A DNA stretch of 64,000 nucleotides from Anthoceros angustus. Taxonomy: Eukaryota > Plantae > Anthocerotophyta. The position numbers and the translations under genes were made by a program. The stretch lies in the NCBI GenBank assembly GCA_010909165.1, contig VJWM01000172.1, positions 434,001 through 498,000 on the forward strand, read 5' to 3'. The notes beneath the pieces were generated by a model, which was not told the origin of the DNA, ran no database searches, and saw only the letters and a list, made by a program, of their open reading frames with translations. Below, in pieces: positions 1 to 64,000 of the stretch; the first letter of the stretch is position 1, and each line of letters opens with the position of its first letter.

Positions 1-209
1 CCCAAGGCAAATGGTTTGACGGAGAACACGAATGGTTTGTTGTGTACAATCTTGACCAAGGTAATCACACTCACATGTATGATTGGGACACCAAATTGCA
101 TTCAGCTTTGTGGGCCTACAAAGGGAGAAGGTGACCACCAAGAAGACTCCTATTATTTAACGTAGAAGAGGGGCCTGATGTCGGGTGGTTCGATCCTCCC
201 CTTGAATTT
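1..209 (+). pseudogene. pol: Gypsy integrase C-terminal core (end of unit 1)
   Basis: PKANGLTENTNGLLCTILTK, YDWDTKL, KVTTKKTPYY, ILPLEF across frames. Confidence 0.85.
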
Positions 210-567
210 CCTCGACGCAAACCTCAACTCCTCATGAGTTTCGGATGCACAATCTAAATTCCATTGATCCTATGCCGACTTGTAATATATGGAGGAAGTC
301 GACCAGCACATGGTGTTTGACCCGAGGATGAACTAGCCGACTCCGTGGAGACAGAGATCCCTCGACCAAGCGCATCCAATATATCATATCGAACCACTTG
401 ATTTGTGAAATCATTTGAGTAATCCACCGATCTATTACAACATCTCGAAGACCAAGCGCTTTCAAAATCTCGATCGAATCACTTGAGTTGCCAAAGTATT
501 TGAGTACTCCATTTGATCCATCACAAAATATGAATGAGCTATGCATTTATAGTTGAAACTTGGGTAA

Positions 568-1169
568 ATATAGACTTGAAGATGGTTTTGTTCTCGATGA
601 TATATTATGAATTATCGATAAGTTTTTTTATTTTGTTAGTAAATTATAGTATATTTAATATTGATATTATAACAAAACATCATCATAAACATCACAAAAT
701 ATTTCCAAGAGATATTATGATAATCGTATAACGTTGTTTTACCATTAACTTATAGAATTATCAAAAACTATACCAAAGATAGACGTGGAAGATATATTAC
801 AAATAACCTTCTCGATCACTAGATAAAGAATGGAAGTAATTTGGCATAAAAGAAGGTAAACATAGTAAATATAGAAAGTGGATAAGAGTAAAAGTAATTA
901 ATGGGGTAGTTTAGGTAAATATAATGGGGCATGATAGAAGCAACAAGAACTCTTGGAGGTAGGATGGGCATCAGTAGCGTGTGGATCACCGACAAGTGCC
1001 CTATACAAATTCGTATGTCGCAAAATCTCTTGGAAATATTGTTTGTGATGTTTATGATGATGTTTTGTTATAATATCAATATGAAATATACTATAATTTA
1101 CTAACAAAATAAAAATTATCGATAATTCATAATATATCATCGAGAACAAAACCATCTTCAAGTCTATAT
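568..1169. repeat. Fold-back: ~145-bp inverted arms, ~310-bp loop
   Basis: 568-713 is the reverse complement of 1025-1169 with few mismatches. Confidence 0.92.
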
Positions 1170-1534
1170 ATGTATGGTCCCTACACACAAATCACAAATC
1201 TATCTTCATATATCTATTTCAATCTTAACTCTATTGATCCTATCGACTTGTAATATATGGAGGAAGTCGACCAGCACATGGTGTTTGACACGGAGGATGA
1301 ACTATTTGGGACTCTGAGCAGAGATCCCTCGACCAAGCGCATCCAATATATCATATCGAGCCACTTGATTTGTGAAATCATTTGAGTAATCCACCGATCT
1401 ATTACAACATCGGAAGACCAAGCGCTTTCAAAATCTCGGATCGAATCACTTGAGTTGCCAAAGTATTTGAGTACTCCATTTGATCCATCACAAAATATGA
1501 ATGAGCTATGCATTTATAGTTGAAACTTGGGTAA

Positions 1535-2140
1535 ATATAGACTTGAAGATGGTTTTGTTCTCGATGATATATTATGAATTATCGATAAGTTTTTTTATTT
1601 TGTTAGTAAATTATAGTATATTTAATATTGATATTATAACAAAACATCATCATAAACATCACAAAATATTTCCAAGAGATATTATGCATAATCGTATAAC
1701 GTTGTTTTACCATTAACTTATAGAATTATCAAAAACTATACCAAAGATAGACGTGGAAGATATATTACAAATAACCTTCTCGATCACTAGATAAAACTGT
1801 CGGAAGTAATTTGGCATAAAAGAAGGTAAACATAGTAAATATAGAAAGTGGATAAGAGTAAAAGTAATTATTGGGGTAGTTTAGGGTAAATATAATGGGG
1901 CATGATAGAAGCAACATAACTCTTGGAGGTAGGATGGGCCGCATTGGCGGTGGATCACCGACAAGTGCCCTATACAAATTCGTATGTCGCAAAATCTCTT
2001 GGAAATATTGTTTGTGATGTTTATGATGATGTTTTGTTATAATATCAATATGAAATATACTATAATTTACTAACAAAATAAAAAAATTATCGATAATTCA
2101 TAATATATCATCGAGAACAAAACCATCTTCAAGTCTATAT
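1535..2140. repeat. Fold-back inverted repeat (extra duplicated copy)
   Basis: Same arms as 568-1169. Confidence 0.92.
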
Positions 2141-2473
2141 ATGTATGGTCCCTACACACAAATCACAAATCTATCTTCATATATCTATTTCAATCTTACG
2201 AAAGGATTCTCATTTTGTTGTCTACAATGATTCCAAGTTTGCCGATCTATGGCTATGATGATGTTTGTGATGCTATCTTTGCTTAGCATCAATTTTGTGT
2301 CGCAAGATTGCTAAGAGGTATTATAATTCTTTTATATGTGTGTATTCCATGTATTAAAATTCCATTTTAGATATGTATATTATGTTGCTCTCAACTAGCT
2401 AGTTCTTTGAGATGTTGTTAAACTCGGTTTGATGTAGAAAAACAAAGGGAATTCGGACTACGTACTGGTCCCG

Positions 2474-2730
2474 ATCCCCATCCATCTCCCCATTTTCACC
2501 CTCCGCAGTGGACTACGTACTTCTGGTCTAGATCCTCATCCATCTCCCCATTTTTACCCTCCGCAGCCGGACTATGTACTTCCCGGTCCGGATCCTCATC
2601 CATCTCCCCATTTTTTCCTCCGCAGCCGGGACCACGACTTCCCGGTCCAGATCCTCATCCATCTCCCCATTTTTCCCTCGCAGCGGACTATGTACTTCTG
2701 GTCCGATCCTCATCCATCACCCCCAAATTT
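2474..2730 (+). repeat. ~58-60 bp minisatellite, 5 copies
   Basis: gatcctcatccatctccccattttt-ccctc(t)gca(aa)gccggactatgtacttc(c)ggtcc. Confidence 0.95.
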
Positions 2731-4882
2731 TGGTATCCCTCCCAAGAATAAGAAGTTGGTATAAGGGAGCACGTGAATGAAGATATCTATGGGAACGCAA
2801 TTGGCTAGATTGTCTATGTTAGCTCGTTGTTGGTAGGATTTCTACTTCCCTTTGTAGGGATTGTTATCCTTCTTCTCTGTTTGTGGTCTGCTCTTATGTG
2901 CAGCCCTAGTATATATTGTTGTGGGGATATGCTTGTGCCTCTCGATGGGGCTTTAGGAGGTGAAATTCTCTTCTTTTATAAAGCATTAAAAATTTGGTGT
3001 AACAAAAGTTACTCTCAACCTTACTTGCCTCTAATGCTCACGCATCACGAACAATGAGCACCGCCGCTGAACAAAGGAATGTAAGCATCGCGGCTCGCTT
3101 AGTCGAATGCTCCAACTCTTGGAATCCGACAACGGTGGTTGGCGTCTGCGGATGGATGCTAGCACATTCAAAATCCGTGAGAGATAAATCAATTCAAGAA
3201 GGATCCGCTTGAGCATACTCCTCTTACAATCGCATGTCACAACGAGTTATCCGAATGGCTAATAAGAGGCGGTAACTTATCCTAGCTAGCAAGCTTGTTC
3301 GAGTTCGCGATGTGTGCCCGGAGTACATGTAGCTCTAGAAGCATCTCCACAAGCCTTCACGAACCACAAGCATTTCAGGACCTTCCATATCAAGAACCTT
3401 TTGCGTCGACTCGTGAGATCGAACATCTTGGATTGTCAAAGAAACCAATTCAAGTGCAACATTTACATAGCGATTACTCACAATTGCTTGCTTGAAGCAA
3501 GAGCAAGGACTTCAAAGAAGAGCTTAACTAGTTGCACCTCCACAAGCCTTCAATGAGGCACGCACTTCAGGACCTTCCTCGCCAAGAAGCTTTTGCATTC
3601 CCGACTCTTGAGACTAAACATCCCGGATTGTTGTGCAACAAACCAATTCAAGTACAACATTTACATAGCGATTGTTCACAATTGCTTGAAGCAAGAAGGA
3701 CTTCAAAGAAGAGCGTAATTGGTTGCACACCCAATTACTACCATTCTACCCTCATGTGCAAGCTAAAGATGAATAAAGCGTGTATGCTCGATGATACATC
3801 GATGAAGTGGTTGACACCAAACCTTGTTGTCACGAGACATACCTCAACATCCGATTCTCACAAGCTGCCTACCGCCGCAGCTATTGCCCTAGGCTTGGAT
3901 TTTCAAGTTCATCAAGGATTTTGCCAAGAAGGCGGCCTCGCTGACCAGCTGACCAAGAAGGACATGCCCTTCAAATGATGGAGCCAAGGCATGAAGCCTT
4001 CGGCTTGAAGGATAGCTTGGTGAGCGCACCAACACTACAACCACCATTGGAAAAACCGTTCCATGTGTAGATGTATGCCTTATTGGGACTATCTTAAGCC
4101 GGAAGACGAGAAGAAGCGGATCATCCAATTTTCTATCGGGGCAACTTATGGATGCCGAGAGAAATTATTCAACCACCGAGAGGGAAGGTCTTAGCATCAT
4201 ATACTCTTGTAAGAAGTTTAGACACTACATGCTTGCTTGTAAGGTGACGTTCCATGTCGACCATTTTGTGTTAAAGTACCTTGTGAACAAGCTAGATTTA
4301 TCAGGAAGGATTGCTAGGTGGGTCCTGTTGCTGCAAGAGTTTGATTTTGATGTAGAAACCAGGCCAAGGAAGCAACATATGAATGCCAATTTTGTTTCCC
4401 GTCTGAAAATTGGAAAATGGAAAATGGATTGTGGCCACTGATGACGTCCCATTTCCCGACGAGGAGCTAGTAGCAGTAGCGCGGTTAGGGGGAGAGGATC
4501 GTGAGCAAAGTACACATTTGATTGAGGCTGGCAAAGAGAGGTACGGAAGGACCAAATGTCTGTGGAAGGGGTTTTAGAGGATTTCGCGGAGGACGATCTA
4601 GGAGTTCGAGATGAAGTAAAAGAGCAAAACATGGGTGCAAGGAGGAGCAAGGTATGCTCTTTAAGTGGAAGGGCTGCAAGTGGAGGCCACAACGCTGGCA
4701 AAAGGATGTGGAGAAACAAATAAGAAATTTGAAGGAAGGAGAGGTGGCACACAAAAATGGTGTGCCTCATGAGGAGGTGTGTGCGCTGGAGTCTAGGAGC
4801 GGGTAGCTCCGCATTGGTGTGTATATGGAGAAGGATTGTGGAGAAACCACACCTCAAAGAGTGCTTGCGTGAGCTGCCTAAA

Positions 4883-6957
4883 CATAGGGGTTATTCTCCA
4901 TTAAAGGGGTTTGGGTCCCTAAAGACCAAAAATGACCCCAAACGGGCCAAAATGCATCATCTTTAGCAAAACCACTCTTTAGACATGTAATCAAAGACAT
5001 TGACCATGTTATTTTCTCGTGAATACTTACGCTAATAGGTTGAAGCAAGAAGGTTCATGGATTTCACCTTCACAAGGAAGGGATTTCAAGGATTTTAATA
5101 GGTGCTAGGAATCCTAAACACCTCTTCGCAGCGATAGTACTTCCTAGCGGGGTGAGCAGAGGCAAACCAAACAAAATTAGTCCAGAGTTAAAGCTGGACG
5201 TCCGGCGCAACCAACACGCAGTAGCAATTGAAGCCGAAGAGAACTACGGACGTCCGAATTGTGAGAGAACATTAACCGATAGCTTGATCATGGCCATCTC
5301 GAGAGGACCAAACTACGACTCTAAAAGTAGCGGACGTGCATTTTGAGTACACAACCGGATCTCCATTGTTAGAGTGAAAACATAGAAGGAATTGGAACAA
5401 TGCGCCGGACGTCGCACATTGGCGAGTTGAAGCACCGGACGTCCGCATTTTCTGAGACCCCAATCTTGTGGGCGTCCAGAGATGGAAAATGGTGGAGTGG
5501 ACGTCCGCATAATGTATATTTATTGTTTGTCTTCTAGAAATATCCGCTGGGATAGGTGCACATAGACTCAATGGCGTAAGAACTCCAAGGTTAAGCACCC
5601 GGGTCGGATCAATACTGGATGGGGTGCTTGACTTTGGTGCTTTAGAATTTCGTTATGCACTTTGGGTCAAATTAGAACTAGGATGGCTTGCTTGTTTTTG
5701 GCGCTTTGAAAACTTTGTAACAACTCCATCATAGCAACCTAGAGGCGTATCAATACTAGGATGGAGTGTTGATTTTTAGTGGTTTGAAAAATTTGTAAAT
5801 CATCCCAGATCTAGGCGTAAAGTCATGAATATTATTTTTGAAAATCATTTGTTGGTTGATGTTATATTCCCACATTCGCTTTGTATACAACATGTAAACC
5901 TTTTGGCCTTACTCTATGTGCCCCTTCGATGACTTGCAATGGATCTCTTTGATTGGTGCGCCAAATGTCCGCTCATTCGAGTTTGATGCACGATAGATGC
6001 ATAGGCCTTGGTTTCTAGATGAGCTACATTTTCCAAAATTCGACATGTATGATGGTGGTTTCTAATGGCCAACCTTTTGAAGACGACAATGTTTCACAAT
6101 GTTTTGAGAAGCAAGAAAATAAATAGAATAGATGATTTGTCCTTGAGTAATGAAAGCCGCTTGATGAAACACAAGTATAAGAGAGCATCCGCTGCCACCG
6201 CGAGCCCTAGTGAGAGCCAGTATCGAAGAAAGAGGTCGCCCAGCCGGGGTTTTGACCAAATGGCGAGTATTTCGTGAGGCTCAAGGAGGACCTATCTATA
6301 CCCACCGTGACGCCCACATGTATGGGGCAAGTGTTCGAGTTAACTATAGCCAAGCTTCGCGTGAGATTTTGAATTTAAGATCCGACTTGCTCCATGTGCC
6401 ACCCATGGATAGATTAAGGTTGAAAGCGACGGACTTGACAAGAAGAAATGTAAGCTCAAGAGTTTGATCAAGAACGGTTGAGGAGGCCTCACCATCCTTT
6501 ACCTTGTCCAATTCTCACCATGGGCCCAATGCGCAGATCTAAGTGCGGCTTATCTCGACACGGAGGGGCCAGTCGTGGTATGCCCGTCTGGGATTGCTCA
6601 ATCACGGGGTTTGAAAAGAGAATTGATGTGAGTGTTGGTGCGGTGGCAAGTGTGCACAAGCAACTTGAACGAAAGTGCTTGCCTACACAAGTATTGACGC
6701 AACCTCTCCAAACCCGTGTATTGCACCTCTTTGGAGTATAAGTCGCGGACGTTGGTGCACTCCAGCTCTTTGGAGCATAAGCGCCACCATCCGCCACTTG
6801 GTACAAAAGTGTGTCCGCATTTGTGCGGACGGTGGGCACATTAGGTCTTCCTTGGGCTCGATGCATGGGCTATGGGTTCGCAAATCAGCGATGAAATGAG
6901 ACATGTGCATTTCTGGATGGTTGGGGCCAAAATGGGGTTCGGAGACAAACCCCTATG
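4883..6957 (+). mobile_element. Non-autonomous TIR DNA element (~2.07 kb), hAT-like termini
   Basis: Ends CATAGGGGTTATTCTCC vs reverse complement CATAGGGGTTTGTCTCC (15/17); clustered GGACGTCC palindromes; no transposase recognised; interrupts a unit. Confidence 0.75.
5579..5764 (+). other. Three tandem degenerate 5S rRNA internal control regions (box A, IE, box C)
   Basis: agaactccaaggttaagc..gggtcggatcaatactggatggg; agaattt..gttatgc..ttgggtc..tagaactaggatgg; aactcc..tagc..aatactaggatgg, vs plant 5S AGAACTCCGCAGTTAAGCGTGCTTGGGCGAGAGTAGTACTAGGATGGG. Confidence 0.75.
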
Positions 6958-8544
6958 CTGAGAAACACTGTTAGTGGAGCTGCAAGAAAGAGCGTCGACA
7001 GGTCCACGGTCGATTGCGTAAGTGGCTGCCAGGAAAACGCAGCAATGTGAGGAGATCAGAGCTGCGTCCGGGCTAGTCATGAGACTAGGCAGCATAGAGA
7101 TGAAGAGGCGGCGATGGCGCGAGAGATGAGCAGTGGCTGCAGTATTATGCCAGCAGCCGATCGCAGGAAGGAGCTGGTTTTGCAAGCCAAGTAGAGGGCG
7201 GGCAGTGGCCACAAAGACCGACATCCCTAGTGGGCAAACTAGAGGGGACGGCGAGGTGTACATGGGAAGAGGAGGTCGGGCGTGAAGGACTCCCATGTCC
7301 ACGGTATTTGCTAAACGCAGGTACTAAGATTCTTAGAGCACGGATCATGCCTAATGGTTTGTCAAGGAAGGCGTCTGTTGTTCCTTAAAATGCCGCCTTA
7401 TTGTCTGAGATGGGGTCTCATACAAGCTTGGTCCGGATGGGAAGATCCGAGGTTGTTTGGAAGAGAAGGAAGCTACTCTCATCATAGAAGCTTTGCATGC
7501 GTAAGAGGCCGGAGGCCATTATTTGGTACAAATTACGATGAAGGAGATCCTAGATGGTTTTGGTGGGCCACGATGCGAGTGATGTGGGATTTTGTTCGGA
7601 GGTGTGATGCATTCCAACGGGTTGGGAGGCCGACTTTGTCAACACAATGGCCTCATACTTATATCCTACCTTTGGCACCTTTCGAGAAGTGGGGCATAGA
7701 CTTTGTGGGTCCCATCAGCCGCCCACAAAATGGACAAGGCAGCAATATATTTTGGTGGATACGGACTCGCACAAAATGGCAGAGGTCAAGCAACAAGGAA
7801 GGATGATGCACCAAGAGGTGGCAAAGTTTCTCTTGAGAACATCATAACCCCAGATGGGTGTCCTTTGGAGCTGGCGATAGGGAACTCATTTTCTCAACTC
7901 GGTGATTGAGTCTTTTACCTCCTACCTCAATATCCTAAGACGAAAGACAACTCCTTACAATCCCAAGGCAAATGGTTTGACGGAGAACACGAATGGTTTG
8001 TTGTGTACAATCTTGACCAAGGTAATCACACTACATGTATGATTGGGACACCAAATTGTATCTGGGCCAGGGCCTAAGGTGATAAAGGGAGAAGGTGACC
8101 ACCAAGAAGACTCCTATTATTTAACGTCGTAGAAGAGGGGCCTGATGTCGGGTTGTTCGTATCCTCCCCTTGAATTTCCCTTGACGTCAAACCTCAACTC
8201 CTCATGAGTTTCGGATGCACAATCCAAAATTTCTCTATTGATCCTATGCCGACTTGTAATATATGGAGGAAGTCGACCAGCACATGGTGTTTGACCCGGA
8301 GGATGAACTAGCTGGGACTCCGTGGAGATGAGATCCTTGCCACCAAGCGCATCCAATATATCATATCGAGCCACTTGATTTGTGAAATCATTTGAGTAAT
8401 CCACGATCTATTACAACATCCGGAAGACCAAGCGCTTTCAAAATCTCGGATCGAATCACTTGAGTTGCCAAAGTATTTGAGTACTCCATTTGATCCATCA
8501 CAAAATATGAATGAGCTATGCATTTATAGTTGAAACTTGGGTAA

Positions 8545-9144
8545 ATATAGACTTGAAGATGGTTTTGTTCTCGATGATATATTATGAATTATCGATAAGT
8601 TTTTTTATTTTGTTAGTAATTATAGTATATTTAATATTGATATTATAACAAAACATCATCATAAACACAAAAATATTTCCAAGAGATATTATAATCAGAT
8701 AACGTTGTTTTACCATTAACTTATAGAATTATCAAAAACTATACCAAAGATAGACGTGGAAGATATATTACAAATAACCTTCTCGATCACTAGATAAAAG
8801 AACGGAAGTAATTTGGCATAAAAGAAGGTAAACATAGTAAATATAGAAAGTGGATAAGAGTAAAAGTAATTATTGGGGTAGTTTAGGTAAATATAATGGG
8901 GCATGATAGAAGCAACAAGAACTCTTCTGAGGTAGGATGGGCATCGTTAGTAGCGGTGGATCACCACAAGTGCCCTATACAAATTCGTATGTCGCAAAAT
9001 CTCTTGGAAATATTGTTTGTGATGTTTATGATGATGTTTTGTTATAATATCAATATGAAATATACTATAATTTACTAACAAAATAAAAAATTATCGATAA
9101 TTCATAATATATCATCGAGAACAAAACCATCTTCAAGTCTATAT
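8545..9144. repeat. Fold-back inverted repeat
   Basis: Same arms. Confidence 0.92.
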
Positions 9145-9484
9145 ATGTATGGTCCCTACACACAAATCACAAATCTATCTTCATATCTATTTCAATCTTA
9201 CGAAAGGATTCTCATTTTGTTGTCTAATGATTCCAAGTTTGCGCCGATCTATGGCTATGATGATGTTTGTGATGCTATCTTTGCTTAGCATCAATTTTGT
9301 GTCAGCAAGATTGCTAAGAGGTATTATAATTCTTTTATATGTGTGTATTCCATGTATTAAAATTCCATTTTAGATATGTATATTATGTTGCTCTCAACTA
9401 GCTAGTTTATGTTGTCGATGTGTTGTTAAATCCGTGGTTGATGTAGAAAAACAAAGGGAATTCGGACTACGTACTTCTGGTCCC

Positions 9485-9740
9485 GATCCCCATCCATCTC
9501 CCCATTTTCACCCTCCGCAGGACTACGACTTTCTCGGGTCTAGATCCTCATCCATCTCCCCATTTTACCCTCCGCAGGACTACGTACTTCGGTCCGGATC
9601 CTCATCCATCTCCCCATTTTTCCCTCCGCAGCCGGACTACGTACTTCTGGTCCAGATCCTCATCCATCTCCCCATTTTTCCCTCTCGCAGCGGACTATGT
9701 ACTTCTGGTCCAGATCCTCATCCATCACCCCCAAATTTTG
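9485..9740 (+). repeat. Minisatellite, 5 copies
   Basis: Counted catccatc cores. Confidence 0.95.
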
Positions 9741-42472: not shown

Positions 42473-42521
42473 GGTATCCCTCCCAAGAATAAGAAGTTGG
42501 TATAAGGGAGCACAGAATGAA

Positions 42522-45794: not shown

Positions 45795-45809
45795 CCTCGA
45801 CGTCAAACC

Positions 45810-46106: not shown

Positions 46107-46152
46107 CACAAAATATGAATGAGCTATGCATTTATAGTTGAAACTTGGGTAA

Positions 46153-47408: not shown

Positions 47409-47450
47409 GGTATCCCTCCCAAGAATAAGAAGTTGGTATAACGGAATGAA

Positions 47451-50675: not shown

Positions 50676-51027
50676 CCCTTGACGTCAAACCTCAACTCCT
50701 CATGAGTTTGGATGCACAATCTTAACTCTATTGATCCTATCGACTTGTAATATATGGAGGAAGTCGATACATGGTGTTTGACACGGAGGATGAACTAGGG
50801 GACTCCGTGGAGACAGAGATCCCTCCCAAGCGCATCAATATATCATATCGAACCACTTGATTTGTGAAATCATTTGAGTAATCCACCGATCTATTACAAC
50901 ATCCGGAAGACCAAGCGCTTTCAAAATCTCGGATCGAATCACTTGAGTTGCCAAAGTATTTGAGTACTCCATTTGATCCATCACAAAATATGAATGAGCT
51001 ATGCATTTATAGTTGAAACTTGGGTAA

Positions 51028-51620
51028 ATATAGACTTGAAGATGGTTTTGTTCTCGATATATTATGAATTATCGATAAGTTTTTTTATTTTGTTAGTAAT
51101 TATAGTATATTTAATATTGATATTAACAAAAACATCATCATAAACATCACAAAATATTTCCAAGAGATATTAGCGCATAATCGGTATAACGTTGTTTTAC
51201 CATTAACTTATAGAATTATCAAAAACTATACCAAAGATAGACGTGGAAGATATATTACAAATAACCTTCTCGATCACTAGATAAAACTGTAAGGAAGTAA
51301 TTTGGCATAAAAGAAGGTAAACATAGTAAATATAGAAAGTGGATAAGAGTAAAAGTAATTATTAGTAGTTTAGGGTAAATATAATGGGGCATGATAGAAA
51401 ACAAGAACTCTTGGAGGTAGGATGGGCATCAGCAGAGCGGTGGATCACCGACAAGTGCCCAGATAATTCATGTCGCAAAATCTCTTGGAAATATTGTTTG
51501 TGATGTTTATGATGATGTTTTTGTTATAATATCAATATGAAATATACTATAATTTACTAACAAAATAAAAATTATCGATAATTCATATATCATCGAACAA
51601 AACCATCTTCAAGTCTATAT
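51028..51620. repeat. Fold-back inverted repeat
   Basis: Same arms. Confidence 0.92.
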
Positions 51621-51955
51621 ATGTATGGTCACACACAAATCACAAATCTATCTTCATATATCTATTTCAATCTTACGAAAGGATTCTCATTTTGTTGTCT
51701 ACAATGATTCCAAGTTTGCGATCTATGGCTATGATGATGTTTGTGATGCTATCTTTGCTTAGCATCAATTTTGTGCTAAGATTGCTAAGAGGTATTATAA
51801 TTCTTTTATATGTGTGTATTCCATGTATTAAAATTCCATTTTAGATATGTATATTATGTTGCTCTCAACTAGCTAGTTTATGTTTGATGTGTTGTTAAAT
51901 CACATGGTTGATGTAGAAAACAAAGGGAATTCGGACTACGTACTTCCCTGGTCCC

Positions 51956-52259
51956 GATCCCCATCCATCTCCCCATTTTCACCCTCCGCAGGGACTACGA
52001 CTTCACGGTCTAGATCCTCATCCATCTCCCCATTTTACCCTCTTGCAGGACTACGTGCTTCTCGGTCCATCCATCTCCCCATTTCCCTCTGCAAAGCCGG
52101 ACTACGTACTTCGGTCGGATCCTCATCCATCTCCCCATTTTTCCCTCTCTGCAAGCGGACTATGCATTCTGGTCAGGATCCTCATCCATCTCCCCATTTT
52201 TCCCTCTGCAGGACTATGTACTTCACGGTCCGGATCCTCATCCATCACCCCCAAATTTT
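51956..52259 (+). repeat. Minisatellite, 6 copies
   Basis: Counted cores. Confidence 0.93.
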
Positions 52260-52305
52260 GGTATCCTCCCAAGAATAAGAAGTTGGTATAAGGGAGCAGA
52301 ATGAA

Positions 52306-55300
52306 GATATCTATGGGAGCATAATTGGCTAGATTGTCTATGTTAGCTACGGTTGTTGGTAGGGATTTCTACTTCCCTTTGTGTAGGGATTGTTATCCCT
52401 TCTTCTCTGCTTCTGATGTCTTATGCAGCCCTAGTATATATTTGTTGTGGGGATATGCTTGTGCCTCTCGATGGGGCTTTAGGAGGTGAAATTCTCTTCT
52501 TTTATAAAGCATTAAAATTTTGGTGTAACAAAAGTTACTCTCAACCTTACGGTCTTGCTGCAATCACGAACAAATGAGCGCTCGCTTCGTGAATGGATTG
52601 AGCCGTACCGTGCTTAGTCGAATGCTCCAACTCTTGGAATCCAACGGTGTGGTTGGCGTCAGGATGGATGCTAGCACATTCAAAAATCCAGAGAGATAAA
52701 TCAATTCAAGAAGGATCGCTTGAGGCATACTCCTCTTACAATCGCATGTCACAACGAAGTTATCCGAATGGCTAATAAGAGGCGGTAACTTATCCTAGCT
52801 AGCTTGTTCGAGTTCACATCAGTACATGTAGCTCAGAAGCATCTCCACAAGCCTTCACGAACCACAAGCATTTCCGGGACCTTCCATATCAAGAACCTTT
52901 TGCAGTCGATCAGATCATCTTGGATCTGAAACCAATTCAAGTGCAACATTTACATAGCGATTACTCACAATTGCTTGCTTGAAGCAAGAGCAAGGACTTC
53001 AAGAAGAGCTTAACTAGTTGCACCTCCACAAGCCTTCCAACGAGGCACGCCGTGGACCTCAAGAAGCTTTTGGTCGACTCTTGAGACTAAACATCCTGGA
53101 TTGTGCAACAAACCAATTCAAGTACATTTACATTGTTCACAATTGCTAGCTTGCCAAGAGCAGGGGACTTCAAGAAGAGCGTAATTGGTTGCACCTACAC
53201 TCCAATTACAGTCATTCTACCCTCATGTGCAAGCTAAAGATGAATAAAGCGTGTATGCTCATGATACAATGATGAAGTGGTTGACACCAAACCTTGTTGT
53301 CACGGAGACATACCTCAACATCCAGTTCTCACAAGCTGCCGGTTGCTATTCTAGGCTTGGATTTTCAAGTTCATCAAGTTTTGCCAAGAAGGCGGCCTCG
53401 TTGTGTGATTGACCAAGAAGGACATGCCCTTCAAATGGCCGAGCCAAGGCATGAAGCCTTTCCTGATTGAAGGATAGCTTGGTGAGCGCACCAACACTAC
53501 AACCACCTGATTGGGAAAAACCGTTCCATGTGTAATGCGATAGATGTGCCGCTATTGGGACTATCTTAAGCGATAAGGACGAAGCGGGATCATCAATTTT
53601 CTATGGCGGGCAACTTATGGATCTTTGAGAAATTATTCAACCAGGAGGAAGGTCTTAGCATCATATACTCTTGTAAGAAGTTTAGACACTACATGCTTGC
53701 TTGTAAGGTGGCGTTCCATGTCGACCATTTTGTGTTAAAGTACCTTGTGAACAAGCTAGATTTATCGGGAAGGATTGCTAGGTGGGTCTTGTCGCAAGAG
53801 TTTGATTTTGATGTAGAAACCAGGCCAAGGAAGCAATATATGAATGCCAATTTTGTTGCCCGTCTAAAATTGGAAAATGGAAAATGGATTGTGGCCACTG
53901 ATGACGTCCCATTTCGAGGAGCTAATGTGAGCGGTTAGGGGAGAGGATCATGAGCAAAGTACACATTTGATTGGTAATGGCAGAGAGGTGTTGCAAAGGA
54001 TGACCAAATATGCTCTGTGGAAGGGGTTTTGTGTGGGATTTTGCCGCGAGGACGATCTAGGAGTTCGAGATGAAGTAAAAGAGCAGCAACATGGGTGCAA
54101 GGAGGAGCAAGGTATGTCTTTAAGTGGAAGGGCTGCAAGTGGAGGCCTAGCTTGGCAAAAGGATGTGGAGAAACAAATAAGAAATCGCAATTTGAAGGAA
54201 GGAGAGGTCACAAAAATGGTGTGCCTCATGAGGAGGTGTGCGTCTGGAGTCTAGAAGCGGAGGTAGCTCCGCATTGGTGAGATATGGAAGGATTGTGGAG
54301 AAACCACACTTGAAGAGTGCTTGCGGTGGAGTCAAGAAGAGCGTCAAGTCCACGGTCGATTGCGTGAAGTGGGCGCCAGGAAAAGCAGCAATGTGAGGAG
54401 ATCGCCAGAGCGCGTCCGGGCTAGCCATGAGACTGGCAGCATAGAGATGAAGGCGGCGATGGGCGAGAGATGGCGGTCGATGGCATGAAGTGCCAGCAGT
54501 CGCTTTGCGAGAAGGAGCTGGTTTTACAAGCCAAGTAGAGGCTAGGCCACACCGACATCCCTAGTGGGCAAACCAGAGGGGGGCGAGGTGTACATGGGAA
54601 GAGGAGGGTCGGCGTGAAGGACTCCCATGTCCGCGGTATTTGCTAAGCTGAGGTACTGAAGATTCTTAGAGCAACGGGATCATGCCTAATGGTTTGTCAA
54701 GGAAGGCGTCTTGTTCCCTAAAAGCTAGCGCCTTATTGTCCTACGAGATGGGGTCTCATACAAGCATCGGATGGGAAGATCCAGGTTGTTTGGAAGAAGG
54801 AAGCTACTCATCATAGAAGCTTTCTAAGAGGCCGGAGGCCATTATTTGGTACAAATTACGATGAAGGAGATCCTAGATGGTTTTGGTGGGCCACGATGCG
54901 AGAGGATGTGGATTTTGTTCGAGGTGTGATGCATTCCAACGGGTTGGGAGGCCGACTGTCAACACAATGGCCTCATACTTATATCCTACCTTTGGCACCT
55001 TTAGGAAGTGGGGCATAGACTTTGTGGGTCCCATCAGCCGCCACAAAATGGACAAGGCGAATATATTTTGGTGGATACGGACTCGCACAAAATGGCGAAA
55101 GCAACAAGGAAGGATGATGCACCGGGTGGCAAAGTTTCTCTTTGAGAACATAGTAATTCGGTATGGGTGTCCTTTGGGTGACGATAGGGGAACTCATTTT
55201 CTCAACTCGGTGATTGAGTCTTTTACCTCCTACCTCAATATCAGAGCATCGAAGACAACTCCTTACAATCCAAGGCAAATGGTTTTGTGGAGAACACGAA

Positions 55301-55464
55301 TGGTTTGTTGTGTACAATCTTGACCAAGGTAATACCACATGTATGATTGGGACACCAAATTTATTTTGTGGGCCTACGGTGGAGAAGGTGACCACCAAGA
55401 AGACTATTATTTAACGCGTGGAAGAGGGGCGATGTCGGGTTGTTCGTATCCTCCCCTTGAATTT
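52306..55464 (+). pseudogene. pol: Decayed Gypsy pol, unit 9
   Basis: RH ORF 53603-53938; INT ORF 54877-55323 KWGIDFVGPI..DDRGTHFLNSVIESF..TTPYNP. Confidence 0.9.
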
Positions 55465-55826
55465 CCCTTGACGTCAAACCTCAACTCCTCATGAGTTTAC
55501 GGATGCACAATCTTAACAACTCTATTGATCCTACTTGTAATATATGGAGGAAGTCGACCGGCACATGGTGTTTGACTGGAGGATGAACTAGCCGGGACTC
55601 CGTGGAGACAGAGATCCCTACGACCAAGCGCATCCAATATATCATATCGAGCCACTTGATTTGTGAAATCATTTGAGTAATCCACTGATCTATTACAACA
55701 TCACGGAAGACCAAGCGCTTTCAAAATCTCGATCGAATCACTTGAGTTGCCAAAGTATTTGAGTACTCCATTTGATCCATCACAAAATATGAATGAGCTA
55801 TGCATTTATAGTTGAAACTTGGGTAA

Positions 55827-56419
55827 ATATAGACTTGAAGATGGTTTTGTTCTCATGATATATTATGAATTATCGATAAGTTTTTTTATTTTGTTAGTAA
55901 ATTATAGTATATTTAATATTGATATTATAACAAAACATCATCATAAACATCACAAAAATATTTCCAAGAGATATTGCAATCGTATAACGTTGTTTCCATT
56001 AACTTATAGAATTATCAAAAACTATACCAAAGATAGAGCGTAAGGAAGTTATATAAATAACCTTCTCGATCACTAGATAAAAGCATGGAAGTAATTTGGC
56101 ATAAAAGAAGGTAAACATAGTAAATATAGAAAGTGGATAAGAGTAAAAGTAATTATTGGGGTAGTTTAGGTAAATATAATGGGGCATGATAGAAGCAAGC
56201 AAAGAACTCTTAGTAGGATGGAGCTCTTAGTAGCGGTGGATCACATGCCCTATAAAAATTCAGATGTCGAAAATCTCTTGGAAATATTGTTTGTGATGTT
56301 TATGATGATGTTTTGTTATAATATCAATATGAAATATACTATAATTTACTAACAAAATAAAAAAAATTATCGATAATTCATAATATATCATCGAGAACAA
56401 AACCATCTTCAATCTATAT
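55827..56419. repeat. Fold-back inverted repeat
   Basis: Same arms. Confidence 0.92.
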
Positions 56420-56748
56420 ATGTATGGTCTACACAAATCACAAATCTATCTTCATATATCTATTTCAATCTTACGAAAGGATTCTCATTTTGTTGTCTAA
56501 TGATTCAAGTTTCGTTGATCTATGGCTATGATGATGTTTGTGATGCTATCTTTGCTTAGCATCAATTTTGTGTCACAAGATTGCTAAGAGGTATATAATT
56601 CTTTTATATGTGTATTCCATGTATTAAAATTCCATTTTAGATATGTATATTATGCTTGCTCTCAACTAGCTAGTTTATGTTGTGATGTGTTGTTAAATCA
56701 CTGTGGTTGATGTAGAAAAAACAAAGGAATTCGGACTACATTTGGTCC

Positions 56749-57063
56749 GATCCCCATCCATCTCCCCATTTTCACCCTCTGCAAGTGGACTCGCATTTCT
56801 GGTCTAGATCCTCATCCATCTCCCCATTTTACCGCAGCCGGACTACGTACTTCCTGGTCGGATCCTCATCCATCTCCCCATTTTTCCCTCTCAGCGGACT
56901 CGCATACTTCCCGGTCCAGGATCCTCATCCATCTCCCCATTTTTCCCTCTGCAAGCCGGACTATGTACTTCTGGTCCGGATCCTCATCCATCTCCCCATT
57001 TTTTCCCTCTGCAAAGCGGACTATGTACTTCGGTCGGATCCTCATCCATCACCCCCAAATTTT
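56749..57063 (+). repeat. Minisatellite, 6 copies
   Basis: Counted cores. Confidence 0.95.
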
Positions 57064-57110
57064 GGTATCCTCCCAAGAATAAGAAGTTGGTATAAGGGAA
57101 CATGAATGAA

Positions 57111-60100
57111 GATATCTATGGGAGCATAATTGGCTAGATTGTCTAGCTACGGTTGTTGGTAGGAGTTTCTACTTCCTTTGTGTAGGGATTGTTATCCCTT
57201 CTTCTCCTGCTTTGTTCTGCTTATGTGCAGCCCTAGTATATATTTGTTGTGGGGATATGCTTGTGCCTCTCGATGGGGCTTTAGGAGGTGAAATTCTCTT
57301 CTTTTTATAAAGCATTAAAAATTTGGTGTAACAAAAGTTACTCTCAACCTCACGGTCTCTAATGCTCATTTGGCAATCTAACAATGAGCGATCGCTGAGC
57401 AGGAACGGTCTTTGCGGCCTTGCTAGTCGAATGCTCCAACTCTTGGAATCCACAACAGCGGTGGTTGGCGTCTACTTGAGATGGATGCTAGCACATTCAA
57501 AAATCCAGGAGAGATAAATCAATTCAAGAAGGATCCGGCGAGCATACCTCTCATAATCGCATGTCACAACGGAGTTATCCGAATGGCTAATAAGAGCGGT
57601 AACTTATCCTAGCTAGCAAGCTTGTCGAGTTCGATGTGTGCACGAGTACATGTAGCTCTAGAAGCATCTCCACAAGCCTTCAACCACAAGCATTTCCGAG
57701 GACCTTCCATATCAAGAACCTTTTGCGGTCGACTCGTGAGATCAACATCTTGGATTGTCGCAAAGAAACCAATTCAAGTGCAACATTTACATAGCGATTA
57801 CTCACAATTGCTTGCTTGAAGCAAGAGCAAGGACTTCAAAGAAGAGCCCAACTAGTTGCACCTCCACAAGCCTTCGACCAGGAGGCACGCACTTCCAGGA
57901 CCTTCCTCGTCAAGAAGCTTTTGCGATCGACTTGAGACTAAACATCCCGGATTGTTGTGCAACAAACCAATTCAAGTACAACATTTACATAGCGATTGTT
58001 CACAATTGCTAGCTTGAAGCAAGAGGGGGACTTCAAAGAAGAGCGTAATTGGTTGCACCTACACTCCAATTACAGTCATTCTACCCTCATGTGCAAGCTA
58101 AAGATGAATAAAGCGTGTAGGCTCGTGCATGATACATGATGCTTGACAGTTGACCAAACCTTGTTGTCACGGAGACATACCTCAACATCCAGTTCTCACA
58201 AGGCTCGCTGCACTTGGCTGCAGCCCTAGGCTTGGATTTTCAAGTTCATCAAGGATTTTGCCAAGAAGGCGGCCTCGTTGTGTGATTGACCAAGAAGGAC
58301 ATGCCCTTCAAATGGGAGAGCCAAGGCATGAAGCCTTCGCTAGCTTGAAGGATAGCTTGGTGAGCGCACCAACACTACAACCACCGATTGGAAAAACCGT
58401 TCCATGTGTACGTAGATGCGCTTATTGGACTATCTTAAGCGGAAGGACGGAAGAAGCGGGATCATCCAATTTTCTATCTTTGGCGGGCAACTTATGGATC
58501 TTGAGAAATTATTCAACCACCGAGAGGAAGGTCTTAGCATCATATACTCTTGTAAGAAGTTTAGACACTAGCATGCTTGCTTGTAAGGTGACGCCATTTA
58601 TGTTGAAAGTACCTTGTGAACAAGCTAGATTTATGTGAAGGATTGCTAGGTCCTGCTTGCCGCAAGAGTTTGATTTTGATGTAGAAACCCAAAGCCAAGG
58701 AAGCAATATATGAATGCCAATTTTGTTGCCCTCGAAAATTGGAAAATGGAAAATGGATTTTAGCCACCGATGACGCCCCATTTCCCGACGAGCTAGTAGC
58801 AATGAGCGATTAGGGGAGAGGATTGTGAGCAAAGTACACATTTGATTGAGGTCAGGCAAAGAAGAGGTGTTGCGGAAGGACCAAATGTACATGGAAGGTT
58901 TTGCAGTGATTTGTCATAGAGGACGATCTAGAGTTCGAGATGAAGTAAAGAGCAGCAAAGATGGGTGCAAGGAGGAGCAAGGTATGCTCTTTAAGTGGAA
59001 GGGCTGCAAGTGGAGGCTACAAGCGTTGGCAAAAGGATGTGGAGAAACACAAGAAATCGCAATTTGAAGGAAGGAGAGGTGGCACACAAAATGGTGTGCC
59101 TCATGAGGAGGTGTGTGCGCCTGGAGCGGCGAGTAGCTCCATTGGTGGTGTATGGAGAAGATTGTGGAGAAACCATCCGAAAGAGTGCTTGCGGTGGACC
59201 GAAGAAAGAGCGTCGACAAGTCCACGGTCGATCACATGGCTGGAAAACGCAGCAATGTGAGGAGATCGCTGAGCTGCAGGGCTAGGCTGAGACCAGCATA
59301 GAGATGAAGAGGCAGCGGCGGCGCAGATGAGCAGTCGATGGCCCCAGTACAGTGCCAGCGGCCGACGCCCAGAAGGAGCTGGTTTTGCGCCAAGTAGAGG
59401 CGAGGCAGCAGACATCCCCAGTGGGCAAACTAGAGGGATCGAGGTACATGGGAAGAGGAGGTCGAGCGTGAAGGACTCCCATGTCCACGTATTTGCTAAA
59501 CGGTGAGGTACCAAGATTCTTAGAGCACGGGATCATGCCTAATGGTTTGTCAAGGAAGGGCGTTTGTTGTTCCTCCTCGCTACTTATTGTCTCTGAGATG
59601 GGGTCTCATACAGCTTGGTCCTATGGGAAGATCCGAGGTTGTTTGAAGAGAAGGAAGCTACTCTCATCATAGAAGCTTTGCATGCGGAGGCCATTATTTC
59701 ACAAATTACGATGAAGGAGATCCTAGATGGTGGTTTGGTGGCCACGATGCAGAGGGATGTGGGATTTTGTTGGTGTGATGCATTCCAACGGGTTGGGAGG
59801 CCGACTTTAACTTTGTCAACACAATGGCCTCATACTTATATCCCTTCTTGGCACCTTCGAAGTGGGGCATAGACTTTGTGGGTCCCATCAGCCCACAAAA
59901 TGGACAAGGCAGCAATATATTTTGGTGGATACTTGACTACAAAATGGCGAGGTCAAGCAACAAGGAAGGATGCACCAGTGGCAAAGTTTCTCTTTGAGAA
60001 CATCGTAACTCGGTATGGGTGTCCTTTGGAGTCGGCCGGTGATAGGGGAACTCATTTTCTCAACTCGGTGATTGAGTCTTTTACCTCTACCTCAATATCC

Positions 60101-60324
60101 TGATCGAAGACAACTCATACAATCCCAAGGCAAATGGTTTTGTGGAGAACACGAATGGTTTTGTTGTGTACAATCTTGACCAAGGTAACTCACACATGTA
60201 TGATTGGGACACCAAATTGCATTCGGTTTGTGGGCTTGATGCTGGAGAAGGTGACCACCAAGAAGACTCCTATTTAACGTGATGAAGAGGGGCACGGGGT
60301 TGTTCGTATCCTCCCCTTGAATTT
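57111..60324 (+). pseudogene. pol: Decayed Gypsy pol, unit 10
   Basis: LKDSLVSAPTLQPP (RT/RH connection); INT VAKFLFENIVTRYGCPLE..DRGTHFLN. Confidence 0.9.
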
Positions 60325-60677
60325 CCCTTGACGTCAAACCTCAACTCCTCATGAGTTTCGGATGCACAATCTTACTTTCTATTGATCCCGTCACTTGGTA
60401 ATATATGGAGGAATCGTCAGCACATGGTGTTTGACACGGAGGATGAACTAGGGACTCCGTGGAGATGATCCTCACGACCAAGCGCATCAATATATCATAT
60501 CGAGCCACTTGATTTGTGAAATCATTTGAGTAATCCACCGATCTATTACAACATCCGAAGACATCAAGCGCTTTCAAAATCTGATCGAATCACTTGACCA
60601 ACAAAGTATTTGAGTACTCCATTTGATCCATCACAAAATATGAATGAGCTATGCATTTATAGTTGAAACTTGGGTAA

Positions 60678-61249
60678 ATATAGACTTGAAGATGGTTTTG
60701 TTCTCGATGATATATGAATTATCGATAAGTTTTTTTTAGTAAATTATAGTATATTTAATATTGATATTATAACAAAACATCATCATAAACATCACAAAAA
60801 TATTTCCAAGAGATATTGATAATCGTATAACGTTGTTTTACCATTAACTTATAGAATTATCAAAAACTATACCAAAGATAGACGTGGAAGATATATTACA
60901 AATAACCTTCTCGATCACTAGATAAAAGCATAGTAATTTGGCATAAAAGAAGGAAACATAGTAAATATAGAAAGTGGATTGAGTAAAAGTAATTATTGGG
61001 GTAGTTTAGGGTAAATATAATGGGGCATGATAGAACAAAGAACTCTGAGGTAGGATGGGCATCAAGGCGGTGGATCCATGCTTCCATAAATTCGATGTCG
61101 CAAAAAATCTCTTGGAAATATTGTTTGTGATGTTTATGATGATGTTTTGTTATAATATCAATATGAAATACTATACAATTTAACAACAAAATAAAAATTC
61201 ATTAATTCATAATATATCATCGAGAACAAAACCATCTTCAAGTCTATAT
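60678..61249. repeat. Fold-back inverted repeat
   Basis: Same arms. Confidence 0.9.
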
Positions 61250-61574
61250 ATGTATGGTCCCTACACACAAATCACAAACTATCTTCATATCTATTTCAAT
61301 CTTTAGAAGGATTCTCATTTTGTTGTCTACAATGATTCCAAGTTTGGCTCTAGCTATGATGATGTTTGTGATGCTATCTTGCTTAGCATCAATTTTGTGT
61401 CCAAGATTGCTAAGAGGTATTATAATTCTTATATGTGTGTATTCCACTAAAATTCCATTTTAGATATGTATATTATGTTGCTCTCAACTAGCTAGTTTAT
61501 GTTGGTCCGATGTGTTGTTAAACTGGTTGATGTAGAAAAACAAAGGGAATTAGGACTACGATTTCACTAGTCCC

Positions 61575-61879
61575 GATCCCCATCCATCTCCCCATTTTCA
61601 CCCTCTCGCAGCTTTGGATCACGACTTCTGTCTAGATCCTCATCCATCTCCCCATTTTACCTCCAGTGCCGGACCACGCCGATTTCTGGTCGGATCCTCA
61701 TCCATCTCCCCATTTTTCCCTCTCGCAAGCCGATTTCCTGGTCCATCCTCATCCATCTCCCCATTTTTCCCTCCGCAGGACTATGTTCTCGGTCCGTGAT
61801 CCTCATCCATCTCCCCATTTTTCCCTCAGCCGACTATGTACTTCTCGGTCGGATCCTCATCCATCACCCCCCAAATTTT
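61575..61879 (+). repeat. Minisatellite, 6 copies
   Basis: Counted cores. Confidence 0.95.
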
Positions 61880-61922
61880 GGTATCCCTCCCAAGAATAAG
61901 AAGTTGGTGCGTGAATGCTGAA

Positions 61923-64000
61923 GATATCTATGGGAGCAATTGGCTAGATTGTCTATGTTAGCCAGTTGTTGGTAGGGACTTCCCTTTGTGTAGGGATTGT
62001 TATCCTTCTTCCTTCGGGTGGTCTGTTCTTATGTGCAGCCCTAGTATATATTTGTTGTGGGATATGCTTGTGCCTCTCGATGGGGCTTTAGGAGGTGAAA
62101 TTCTCTTCTTTTTATAAAGCATTAAAAATTTGGTGTAACAAAAGTTACTCTCAACCTTACGGTCTCTAATGCGCAAGTACGAACAATGAGCTCGTTGAAT
62201 GTGAAGTGGTACTCGCTTAGTCGAATGCTCCAACTCTTGGAATCCTCGACAACGGTGGTTACGCCCCTGCCGAGATGGATGCACATTCAAAAATCCGGAG
62301 AGATAAATCAATTCAAGAAGGATCCGGCTGAGGCATACTCCTCTTACAATCGCATGTCACAACGAGTTATCTCGAATGGCTAATAATAAGAGGCGGTAAC
62401 TTATCCAGCTAGCAAGCTTGTTCGAGTTCATGGCGGTGCCTGAGTACATGTAGCTCTAGAAGCATCTCCACAAGCCTTCCAACCACAAGCATTTCGGGAC
62501 CTTCCATATCAAGAACCTTTGCGCCCGACTGTGAGATCAACATCTTGGATTAGCAGCAAACCAATTCAAGTGCAACATTTACATAGCGATTACTCACATT
62601 GCTTGCTTGAAGCAAGAGGACTTCAAAGAAGAGTTTAACTAGTTGCACCTCCACAAGCCTTCGAACGGGAGCGCCGCACTTCCCTCGAAGCTTTTAGCCC
62701 GACTCGAGACTAAACATCCTGGATTGTTGTGCAACAAACCAATTCAAGTACAACATTTACATAGCGATTATCACAATTGCTAGCTTGAAAGAGTGGACTT
62801 CAAAGAAGAGGCGTAATTGCACCTACACTCCAATTACAGTCATTCTACCCTCATGCAAGCTAAAGATGAATAAAGCGTATGCTCCGCATGATATAATCGA
62901 TGAAGGTTGACACCAAACCTTGTTGTCACGGAGACATACCTCAACATCCGGTCACAAGCTGCTCACGGTAGCTATTGACTACTTAGGCTTGGATTTTCAA
63001 GTTCATCAAGGATTTTGCCAAGAAGGCGGCCTCGTTGGCTGGATTGACCAAAGGACATGCCCTTCAAATGAGAGCAGGCATGAAGCCTTTCAAAGATTGA
63101 AGGATAGCTTGGTGGCGCACCAACACTACAACCACCGATTAGGAAAACCGTTTCCATGTATGGATGTTCACGCTATTGGGACTATCTTAAGCAGGACGAG
63201 AAGAAGGATCCAATTTTCTGGCGCAACTTATGGATCTTGAGAGAAATTATTCATGAGGGGAAGGTCTTAGCATCATATACTCTTGTAAGAAGTTTAGACA
63301 CTACATGCTTGTAAGGTGACGTTCCATGTCGACCATTTTGTGTTAAAGTACCTTGTGAACAAGCTAGATTTATCAGGAAGGATTGCTAGGTGGGTCCACA
63401 TGCTGCAAGAGTTTGATTTTGATGTAGAAACCAGGCCAAGGAAGCAACATATGAATGCCAATTTTGTTGTCATTCAAAATTGGAAAATGGAAAATGGATT
63501 GTGGCGAGCCCCATTTCCATTTGACGAGGAGCTAGTAGCGAGGCGTTAGGGGAGAGGATCATGAGCAAAGTACACATTTGATTGAGGGCTGCGTGAAGAG
63601 GTGTTGAGCGTAAGGACCAAATGCATGGAAGGGGTTTTGTGCGTGAGTTTGCGGAGGACGATCTAGGAGTTCGAGATGAAGTAAAGAGCAGCAGCATGGG
63701 TGCAAGGAGAGGAGCAAGGTATGCTTTTAAGTGGAAGGGCTGCAAGGAGGCCACAACGTTGGCAAAAGGATGTGGAGAAAGCAAGAAATCGCAATTTGAA
63801 GGAAGGAGGAGGTGGCACACAAAATGGTGTGCCTCATGAGGAGGTGTGTGCTGGAGTCTAGAAGCAGGTAGCTCCGCATTGGTGGTGTATATGGAGAAGG
63901 ATTGGAGAAACCACACGTCAAAGAGTGCTTGCGTGGAGTGCAAGAAAGAGCGTCGACAAGTCCACTGGCCGACAGTAAGTGCGCGAAAACGCAGCAATGT
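61923..64000 (+). pseudogene. pol: Decayed Gypsy pol, unit 11 (runs off the window)
   Basis: RH ORF 63316-63549 FHVDHFVLKYLVNKLDLSGRIARW..LQEFDF. Confidence 0.88.

Follow-up and report, generated by a model that had tools for sequence, protein, structure and literature searches.

The 64,000-nucleotide stretch of Anthoceros angustus DNA analysed here (the window) is a head-to-tail array of composite units, quite probably a composite macrosatellite formed by DNA-level, head-to-tail copying of a dead ~4.9-kb stretch. A blastn comparison of one unit (unit J, 56743-61684) with the window, together with a map of offsets counted from that unit, gave nine complete units (B-J) and two partial units at the edges (A and K), a total of 11, the copy number and long-range order being taken from one visibly noisy assembly. 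All units have the same orientation, are colinear with unit J and share identical internal breakpoints, as the initial annotation had described. Its period of ~4.85 kb falls within the unit lengths of 4592-5185 bp observed after excision of insertions, but its count of ~12 units becomes 11 here. Hence, as in long-monomer satellites, one kb-scale monomer is repeated head to tail in a single orientation (11 colinear units of 4.6-5.2 kb). Both window ends cut through the array, which is at least 64 kb long. Rfam and tRNA scans over the window returned no matches.

1..64000, forward strand: tandem array of composite ~4.9-kb units, n = 11 (blastn with unit J as query, offset map)
1..2464, forward strand: unit A, partial (offset map)
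2465..9573, forward strand: unit B, split by insertion 1 (offset map)
9574..25170, forward strand: unit C, split by insertions 2 and 3 (offset map)
25171..30355, forward strand: unit D (offset map)
30356..35417, forward strand: unit E (offset map)
35418..42146, forward strand: unit F, split by insertion 4 (offset map)
42147..47192, forward strand: unit G, among the cleanest units (offset map)
47193..52039, forward strand: unit H (offset map)
52040..56742, forward strand: unit I (offset map)
56743..61684, forward strand: unit J, the offset reference (blastn against the window)
61685..64000, forward strand: unit K, partial, ended by the window edge (offset map)

Unit G served as the reference for unit anatomy, and its parts are given below.

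42134..42464, forward strand: 59/60-bp minisatellite, 5.7 copies (TRF)
42485..42502, forward strand: motif AAGAATAAGAAGTTGGTA, directly after the minisatellite (conserved in 9 units)
43080..43469, forward strand: 192-bp motif, 2.1 copies (TRF, blastn)
43575..44122, forward strand: Gypsy pol relic part 1, reverse transcriptase (RT) tail beyond the catalytic domain plus RNase H (tblastn)
44150..44950, forward strand: GC- and purine-rich stretch between RNase H and integrase (without protein similarity)
45085..45849, forward strand: second part of the Gypsy pol relic, with the zinc finger and catalytic core of integrase plus ~40 further residues (tblastn)
46153..46302, forward strand: fold-back left arm (self-comparison)
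46616..46764, reverse strand: fold-back right arm (self-comparison)

The only protein similarity found by tblastn is confined to unit offsets ~1360-2000 and ~2750-3800, the broken reading frames having been queried in separate pieces. Against 150 Gypsy proteins the similarity begins at offset ~1360-1430, past the RT catalytic domain, with no tblastn match upstream of ~1360. The first part of the relic is 50-55% identical to liverwort Gypsy proteins (tblastn). Its RNase H was recognised as Pfam PF17917 (E 1.5e-20), and PF17917/PF17919 match the corresponding segments in units B and H. When the RNase H piece was used to scan metagenomes, only three distant relatives of 35-39% identity emerged. 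In the second part tblastn did not detect the C-terminal part of integrase. The interval between RNase H and integrase exceeds a normal linker by ~0.6-0.7 kb, and this stretch gave no homologue in word searches and no protein similarity. RVT_1, protease (RVP) and gag families were absent from 100 non-pol pieces. Compared with an intact Ty3/gypsy element, the unit thus has RNase H and integrase, both broken, whereas gag, protease and the RT catalytic domain were not found, and no unit component is capable of autonomous retrotransposition. Of the protease end, RT, RNase H and integrase read in the initial annotation, the RT tail, the RNase H and the zinc finger and core of integrase hold, but the protease and the RT catalytic domain do not. 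Its absence of gag agrees with both tblastn and the 100 non-pol pieces. A whole pol is contradicted by the ~0.7 kb without protein similarity that parts RNase H from integrase and by the truncation of both ends.

Each unit carries a 612-bp fold-back composed of 150-nt arms of ~95% complementarity and a 313-nt loop, which has a folding energy of -160 kcal/mol versus -48 +/- 4.5 for shuffled sequences. The fold-back claimed for every unit is therefore real, and its 150-nt arms are the terminal inverted repeats expected of MITE or fold-back elements; judged by this structure it is MITE-like. Its flanks, invariant across all units, are TA/TATA, which in such AT-rich DNA is uninformative as a target-site duplication. 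TRF likewise found the expected minisatellite, with a period of 59 bp, in every unit at 2.5-5.7 copies. A 192-bp duplication is common to all units and ancestral to them. The antisense ORF of the earlier reading fared less well: its frame shifts between units, it belongs to no Pfam family and word searches found no homologue. For the 2.5 kb of non-pol sequence in the unit no origin was identified, which counts against the composite reading.

Four later insertions interrupt the units.

4870..6973, no strand assigned: insertion 1, a 2.1-kb element with terminal inverted repeats in unit B (flanks)
11987..17050, no strand assigned: insertion 2, a purine-rich insert of ~5.06 kb in unit C (sequence comparison)
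18627..24457, reverse strand: insertion 3, a Ty1/copia element in unit C (primer binding site, copia gag, RVT_2, target duplication, LTR ends)
35616..37670, no strand assigned: insertion 4, of the insertion 1 family, in unit F (identity to insertion 1)

Insertion 1 is flanked by a target duplication of ~8-10 bp and had no Rfam match at E <= 1. Insertion 4, an independent copy of the same family, is 88.7% identical to it and lies at a different site in the opposite orientation. Insertion 2 lies in the linker, and comparison showed the two to be unrelated. Insertion 3 is nested in unit C, at the inward-facing edge of its left fold-back arm, and carries copia gag and RVT_2, LTR ends, a 5-bp target duplication (TATTG) and an exact iMet primer binding site (PBS) at 24285-24296, the sole exact one in a PBS search of the window. 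Three units have private duplications that are 96.6-99.3% identical outside CG/CHG sites. An internal duplication of ~930 bp in unit A (1-1219 / 1220-2464) gives that unit two fold-backs, the copies being 99.3% identical outside CG/CHG; a 358-bp tandem duplication within integrase (28272-28958) is found only in unit D, and a 175-bp duplication at ~33000-33348 only in unit E.

Raw divergence between units is 6-16%. The differences cluster at and beside CG/CHG sites and include indels and neighbouring A/T sites; transitions make up only ~50% of them, and CG/CHG sites are likewise enriched in gaps. When columns near CG/CHG were left out, units were 90-98% identical and the unit tree became nearly star-like. 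The neighbour clades of the all-column tree (B-E, F-H and I-J), which might have recorded stepwise local duplication, mostly dissolved without those columns. Much of the 6-16% divergence thus looks like noise, and the CG/CHG-centred differences combined with 90-98% identity elsewhere suggest a methylated and fairly young array. This is a caution for the assembly, in which differences between repeat copies cluster at CG/CHG and resemble noise from the sequencing of methylated bases. Repeat ages, "decay" and broken frames in this genome should not be taken from the raw sequence.

Given this anatomy, the DNA-level amplification of a dead composite module proposed in the initial annotation is favored by the common truncation points, the 0.7-kb interruption and the fold-back with invariant flanks, all shared by the units. 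The founding stretch would already have held a Gypsy pol fragment truncated at both ends and split by a foreign stretch of ~0.7 kb, together with the 612-bp MITE-like fold-back insertion, the 59-bp minisatellite and the 192-bp duplication. Unequal exchange or replication slippage would be the most likely route of amplification, perhaps with the minisatellite as seed; rolling-circle amplification would be an alternative. The array went on to change: the number of minisatellite copies varies, internal duplications arose in three units and at least four transposons inserted. The founding junction lies outside the window, as do the array ends. Plants are known to have composite kb-scale satellites that include parts of transposable elements (PMC3648361, PMC9659126).

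The whole unit might instead derive from a single rearranged Gypsy element, either as an array of internally deleted, non-autonomous copies sharing LTRs or as an amplified 3' half comprising the pol tail, a 3' UTR with its tandem repeats and part of an LTR, comparable to maize CRM1TR and CRM4TR. We consider this unlikely. It draws on the AAGAATAAGAAGTTGGTA motif that follows the minisatellite in 9 units, which could be a polypurine tract then TG (polypurine/TGGTAT) or a degenerate iMet-type PBS, and tandem repeats such as those of 59 bp and 192 bp are frequent in the LTRs and 3' UTRs of Gypsy elements (PMC7004042, PMC3648361); an AATAAA is also located shortly upstream of the RT tail. This weak conserved motif was the only signal seen of LTRs with an adjoining PBS and polypurine tract, so that the LTR-less state given in the initial annotation is a possible one. 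However, the PBS match requires 2-3 mismatches or an indel, the motif is not preceded by CA, and near-matches to the iMet PBS across the window are at the chance level (4 found, 5 expected). Downstream of integrase, the scan for a polypurine tract with TG after it yielded nothing convincing, and the missing gag, protease and RT catalytic domain also count against a single element. An assembly artefact, in which the assembler wrongly joined or expanded one or a few units, is very improbable, the least likely of the explanations. The region is indeed noisy in the assembly, but a simple concatemer is argued against by the four different transposon insertions, which have target duplications and lie at different offsets in different units, and by the three different unit-specific duplications. 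Minisatellite copy number also differs among units, and private and shared variants persist among them outside CG/CHG.

If the dead-module reading is correct, the array is probably methylated, silent repeat DNA without coding function, and the CG/CHG-centred error pattern lends indirect support to the heterochromatin part of the heterochromatic satellite suggested earlier. That the repeat instead has a function, as a centromeric or pericentromeric satellite or as a hairpin-RNA or siRNA locus driven by the fold-back, seems very unlikely. The case for function is that a 160-bp stretch around the left arm (offsets 3880-4039) is nearly invariant and the least variable part of the unit, with four consecutive 40-bp windows having a diversity of <= 0.017 versus a median of 0.09; as context, the predicted centromeres of one liverwort, placed via tandem repeats, are Ty3/gypsy-enriched (PMC12885004). 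However, the left arm is ~20% G+C and its few CG/CHG sites, hence little noise, explain the low diversity, and arm complementarity is the same within units (94.1%) as across units (93.5%), so nothing suggests that pairing is under selection. On these grounds, selection acting on the hairpin was set aside. Moreover, the hairpin lacks pol sequence (minus-strand self matches in blastn are the fold-back arms only) and so could not target the Gypsy family. This weakens the proposed small-RNA source against that family, since the sole inverted repeat is an AT-rich fold-back without pol and all units face the same way. A functioning satellite, heterochromatic or linked to the centromere, in which hairpin RNA transcribed from the nearly invariant 150-nt fold-back would seed methylation of the entire unit, Gypsy relic included, through small RNAs, is if anything slightly more improbable still.

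As a dead composite module the array is fairly ordinary, such composite repeats being already known in plants. It adds a bryophyte example to the long-monomer satellites built from transposon debris, one in which the monomer carries pol coding sequence where LTR or UTR would be more usual. The maize CRM1TR and CRM4TR repeats (Sharma et al. 2013, PMC3648361) are likewise tandem repeats built from part of one Gypsy element, with nested retrotransposon insertions, but their monomers have only LTR and UTR sequence whereas the A. angustus unit includes pol coding sequence. Those arrays were dated by the nested elements, and the proposed origin was illegitimate recombination or deletion with growth by conversion (PMC3648361). 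Sobo of Solanum bulbocastanum (Tek et al. 2005), in the summary given by PMC3648361, has a 4.7-kb mosaic monomer of retrotransposon-derived, satellite and other genomic DNA. It is similarly a kb-scale mosaic amplified as DNA, at one locus, but its retrotransposon part is LTR, whereas that of A. angustus is RNase H and integrase coding sequence. The potato centromeric long-monomer satellites (Gong et al. 2012), as cited in PMC10984392, PMC9659126 and PMC3648361, also arose by amplification of retrotransposon-related sequence, with monomers reaching ~5 kb; they are CENH3-bound and megabase-sized, whereas the A. angustus array is known from the sequence of a 64-kb window. On the rye B chromosome, as PMC3648361 and PMC9659126 list them, E3900, a repeat of the 3.9-kb class, stems from a Ty3/gypsy element and includes gag coding sequence, and D1100 includes a rearranged MITE. 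Nothing points to a B or sex chromosome location for the A. angustus array, and E3900 differs in lineage (rye versus bryophyte) and in carrying gag where the A. angustus unit has pol. The A. angustus unit combines the ingredients of both rye repeats, Gypsy coding sequence and a MITE-like part.

Colinear plus-strand matches were returned across the full 64 kb when the repeat unit at 56743-61684 (unit J, within which unit offsets are counted) was compared with the window by blastn, and the head-to-tail, same-orientation array described in the initial annotation is real. The other unit borders were set by a base-by-base offset map of the window, unit J being the blastn query:

1-2464, unit A, partial
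2465-9573, unit B, full
9574-25170, unit C, full
25171-30355, unit D, full
30356-35417, unit E, full
35418-42146, unit F, full
42147-47192, unit G, full
47193-52039, unit H, full
52040-56742, unit I, full
56743-61684, unit J, full
61685-64000, unit K, partial

The array crosses both window ends, and full units are 4592-5185 bp long with insertions excised. TRF detected the predicted minisatellite once per unit (59 bp, 2.5-5.7 copies) together with a 192-bp motif of ~2 copies. Three units contain private duplications of ~930 bp (A), 358 bp (D) and 175 bp (E), and four inserts interrupt the array:

4870-6973, ins1, terminal-inverted-repeat (TIR) element in unit B
~11987-17050, ins2, purine-rich insert in unit C
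18627-24457, minus strand, ins3, Ty1/copia element in unit C
35616-37670, ins4, TIR element in unit F

The four insertions speak for an array that is present in the genome rather than a concatemer artefact, as do the private duplications and the variation in the minisatellite; the copy number comes from one noisy assembly.

The proposed unit anatomy held for the array itself and failed for the extent of pol. The "whole pol" was an overstatement: each unit carries an RNase H-integrase relic that is truncated twice and interrupted. RNase H (PF17917/PF17919) is the sole pol domain of the unit recognised by Pfam. When a complete set of 1.84 billion representative proteins was scanned with the RNase H piece, the matches were Gypsy polyproteins, the closest named relatives coming from two liverworts, Riccia sorocarpa and Marchantia polymorpha; among these, a Marchantia gene tagged Mp_Vg/MARPO_YB appears to be sex-chromosome-linked. 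When 150 Gypsy proteins from the scan were run against the units by tblastn, similarity was confined to two places per unit: offsets ~1360-2000, which encode the reverse transcriptase (RT) tail past the catalytic domain plus RNase H (50-55% identity), and offsets ~2750-3800, which encode the integrase zinc finger, the core and then ~40 residues more. The gap between RNase H and the zinc finger is 105-128 residues in the reference proteins versus ~320 codons in the unit. This surplus of ~0.6-0.7 kb is rich in GC and purines, and neither tblastn with the 150 proteins nor look-up found a protein relative of this linker. Upstream of offset ~1360 the N-terminal parts of the reference polyproteins, RVT_1 included, gave zero matches even at E <= 1, and none of 100 stop-free non-pol pieces, taken from both strands, matched a gag, protease or RT family in Pfam. 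Hence, the "PR-end/RT" segment is absent, and the reported lack of gag stands. The minus-strand "antisense ORF" was not upheld, as its reading frame differs between units and neither a protein family nor a homologue was found for it.

The truncation points, the interruption and the fold-back (a hairpin-forming insert) are common to all units and mobility genes are found in none, which shows that, as had been proposed, a dead module was amplified at the DNA level. Copying would have proceeded through unequal exchange or slippage, with the minisatellite as a possible seed, or in a rolling-circle burst; the near-star tree of the units does not separate these routes.

Raw pairwise identity between units is 84-94%, with transitions about as frequent as transversions, ~0.45 indel events per substitution and a patchy diversity of 0.011 to 0.21 per 40-bp window. 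Neutral decay of plant repeats would not be expected to give near-equal transitions and transversions, such an indel rate or such patchiness. We binned the alignment columns of units B-J by how far they lie from CG and CHG sites. Minor-allele frequency was 0.16 at CG sites, 0.12-0.13 at A/T sites one base away from CG/CHG, 0.07-0.09 two bases away and ~0.025-0.04 at eight or more bases, and gap frequency followed the same gradient. Inter-copy differences in these units, including indels and changes at neighbouring A/T sites, bunch within ~2-5 nt of CG/CHG. Deamination of methylcytosine gives nearly all transitions at the C itself, leaving neighbouring A/T unaffected and producing no indels; transitions made up 51% of the changes at CG sites. 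The private duplications, younger because they are unit-specific, had identities away from and near CG/CHG of 99.3% and 95.9% (A), 96.6% and 84.3% (D) and 98.9% and 88.3% (E), their gap columns being evenly split in D and mostly close to such sites in A and E. The pattern fits basecalling error at methylated cytosines. With columns <=5 nt from CG/CHG removed, unit identity was 90-98% (97-98% for the cleanest units, B, F, G and H), and the tree became nearly star-like, the neighbour clades of the all-column tree having mostly gone. The array is probably methylated, and probably younger and more uniform than the raw sequence implies; numerous broken frames in the units may not be genuine. As the differences have the look of sequencing noise at methylated cytosines, neither repeat ages nor broken frames can be relied on in this A. 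angustus assembly.

The hairpin reported for every unit was confirmed. In unit G its arms (46153-46302 and 46616-46764) are ~95% complementary around a 313-nt loop, with a folding energy of -160 kcal/mol versus -48 +/- 4.5 for shuffles. Because its flanks are identical across all units, the fold-back was a single ancestral insertion, or palindrome, copied along with the unit, and it is MITE-like in having long terminal inverted repeats between AT-rich TA/TATA flanks. There is no pol sequence inside it, so a hairpin RNA made from it could not target the Gypsy family, and blastn of the unit found no other inverted unit parts in the window; the suggestion of a small-RNA source against that family is weakened. 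Four consecutive 40-bp windows at offsets 3880-4039 (left arm, e.g. 46097-46260) have diversity <= 0.017 versus a median of 0.09, most simply a 160-bp stretch with few CG/CHG sites. The right arm is less uniform than the left, an asymmetry for which few CG/CHG sites may only partly account.

Repeat finding could not settle the LTR question, since a shared-LTR array would put one LTR in each unit. The lone lead from signal scans was a AAGAATAAGAAGTTGGTA motif conserved directly after the minisatellite in nine units (42485-42502 in unit G and the matching place in eight others), which may represent either a degenerate iMet primer-binding site or a polypurine tract with TG after it, possibly as a relic. 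Another TGGTATC occurs 26 nt upstream of the motif. Near-matches to the iMet site occur at chance frequency in the window, the signal scan gave no convincing polypurine tract plus TG after integrase, and a metagenome scan for relatives returned distant ones only. Given one weak motif, chance-level sites and distant relatives, the label "LTR-less" is unproven. It seems unlikely that a single rearranged element makes up the whole unit, be it a shared-LTR array or a pol tail with 3' UTR and part of an LTR (cf. maize CRM1TR). A composite satellite has precedents: PMC3648361, PMC9659126 and PMC10984392 document long-monomer satellites assembled from transposon pieces. These include Sobo, with a 4.7-kb monomer of LTR, satellite and genomic DNA (PMC3648361), the Gypsy-derived rye E3900, gag sequence included, and rye D1100, a rearranged MITE (both PMC3648361, PMC9659126), maize CRM1TR and CRM4TR (PMC3648361) and potato centromeric repeats, whose monomers reach ~5 kb (PMC10984392, PMC9659126, PMC3648361). 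Most of these cases arose from LTR or UTR sequence; a monomer with RNase H and integrase, like the present one, is less usual and belongs to the same kind. The Anthoceros angustus array is an example of this class.

Among the inserts, ins3 encodes copia-type gag and RVT_2. Its iMet primer-binding site (24285-24296) is exact, TATTG is duplicated at its target, and the element sits where the left fold-back arm of unit C has its inner edge. Over the first 93 bp its LTR ends differ at a single CG site; the remainder of the presumed ~160-bp LTRs aligns poorly. Ins1 and ins4 are copies of one ~2.07-kb TIR element, 88.7% identical and oppositely oriented, each in its own unit and at a different offset; they have ATAGGGGTT-type inverted ends and target duplications of ~8-10 bp. 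Around 5579-5764 in ins1 there was no Rfam match even at E <= 1 and no tandem repeat by TRF. Ins2 (~5 kb, G+C 0.54) has a strong plus-strand excess of A and G, long open pieces and a 102-bp x2 repeat at 16600-16797; it gave no Pfam family, terminal repeats or similarity elsewhere in the window. The unrelated ins1 and ins2 entered the purine-rich linker of different units at offsets no more than ~100 bp apart (offsets ~2450-2570; window ~4869 and ~11987), and either chance or a hot spot for insertion could explain this.
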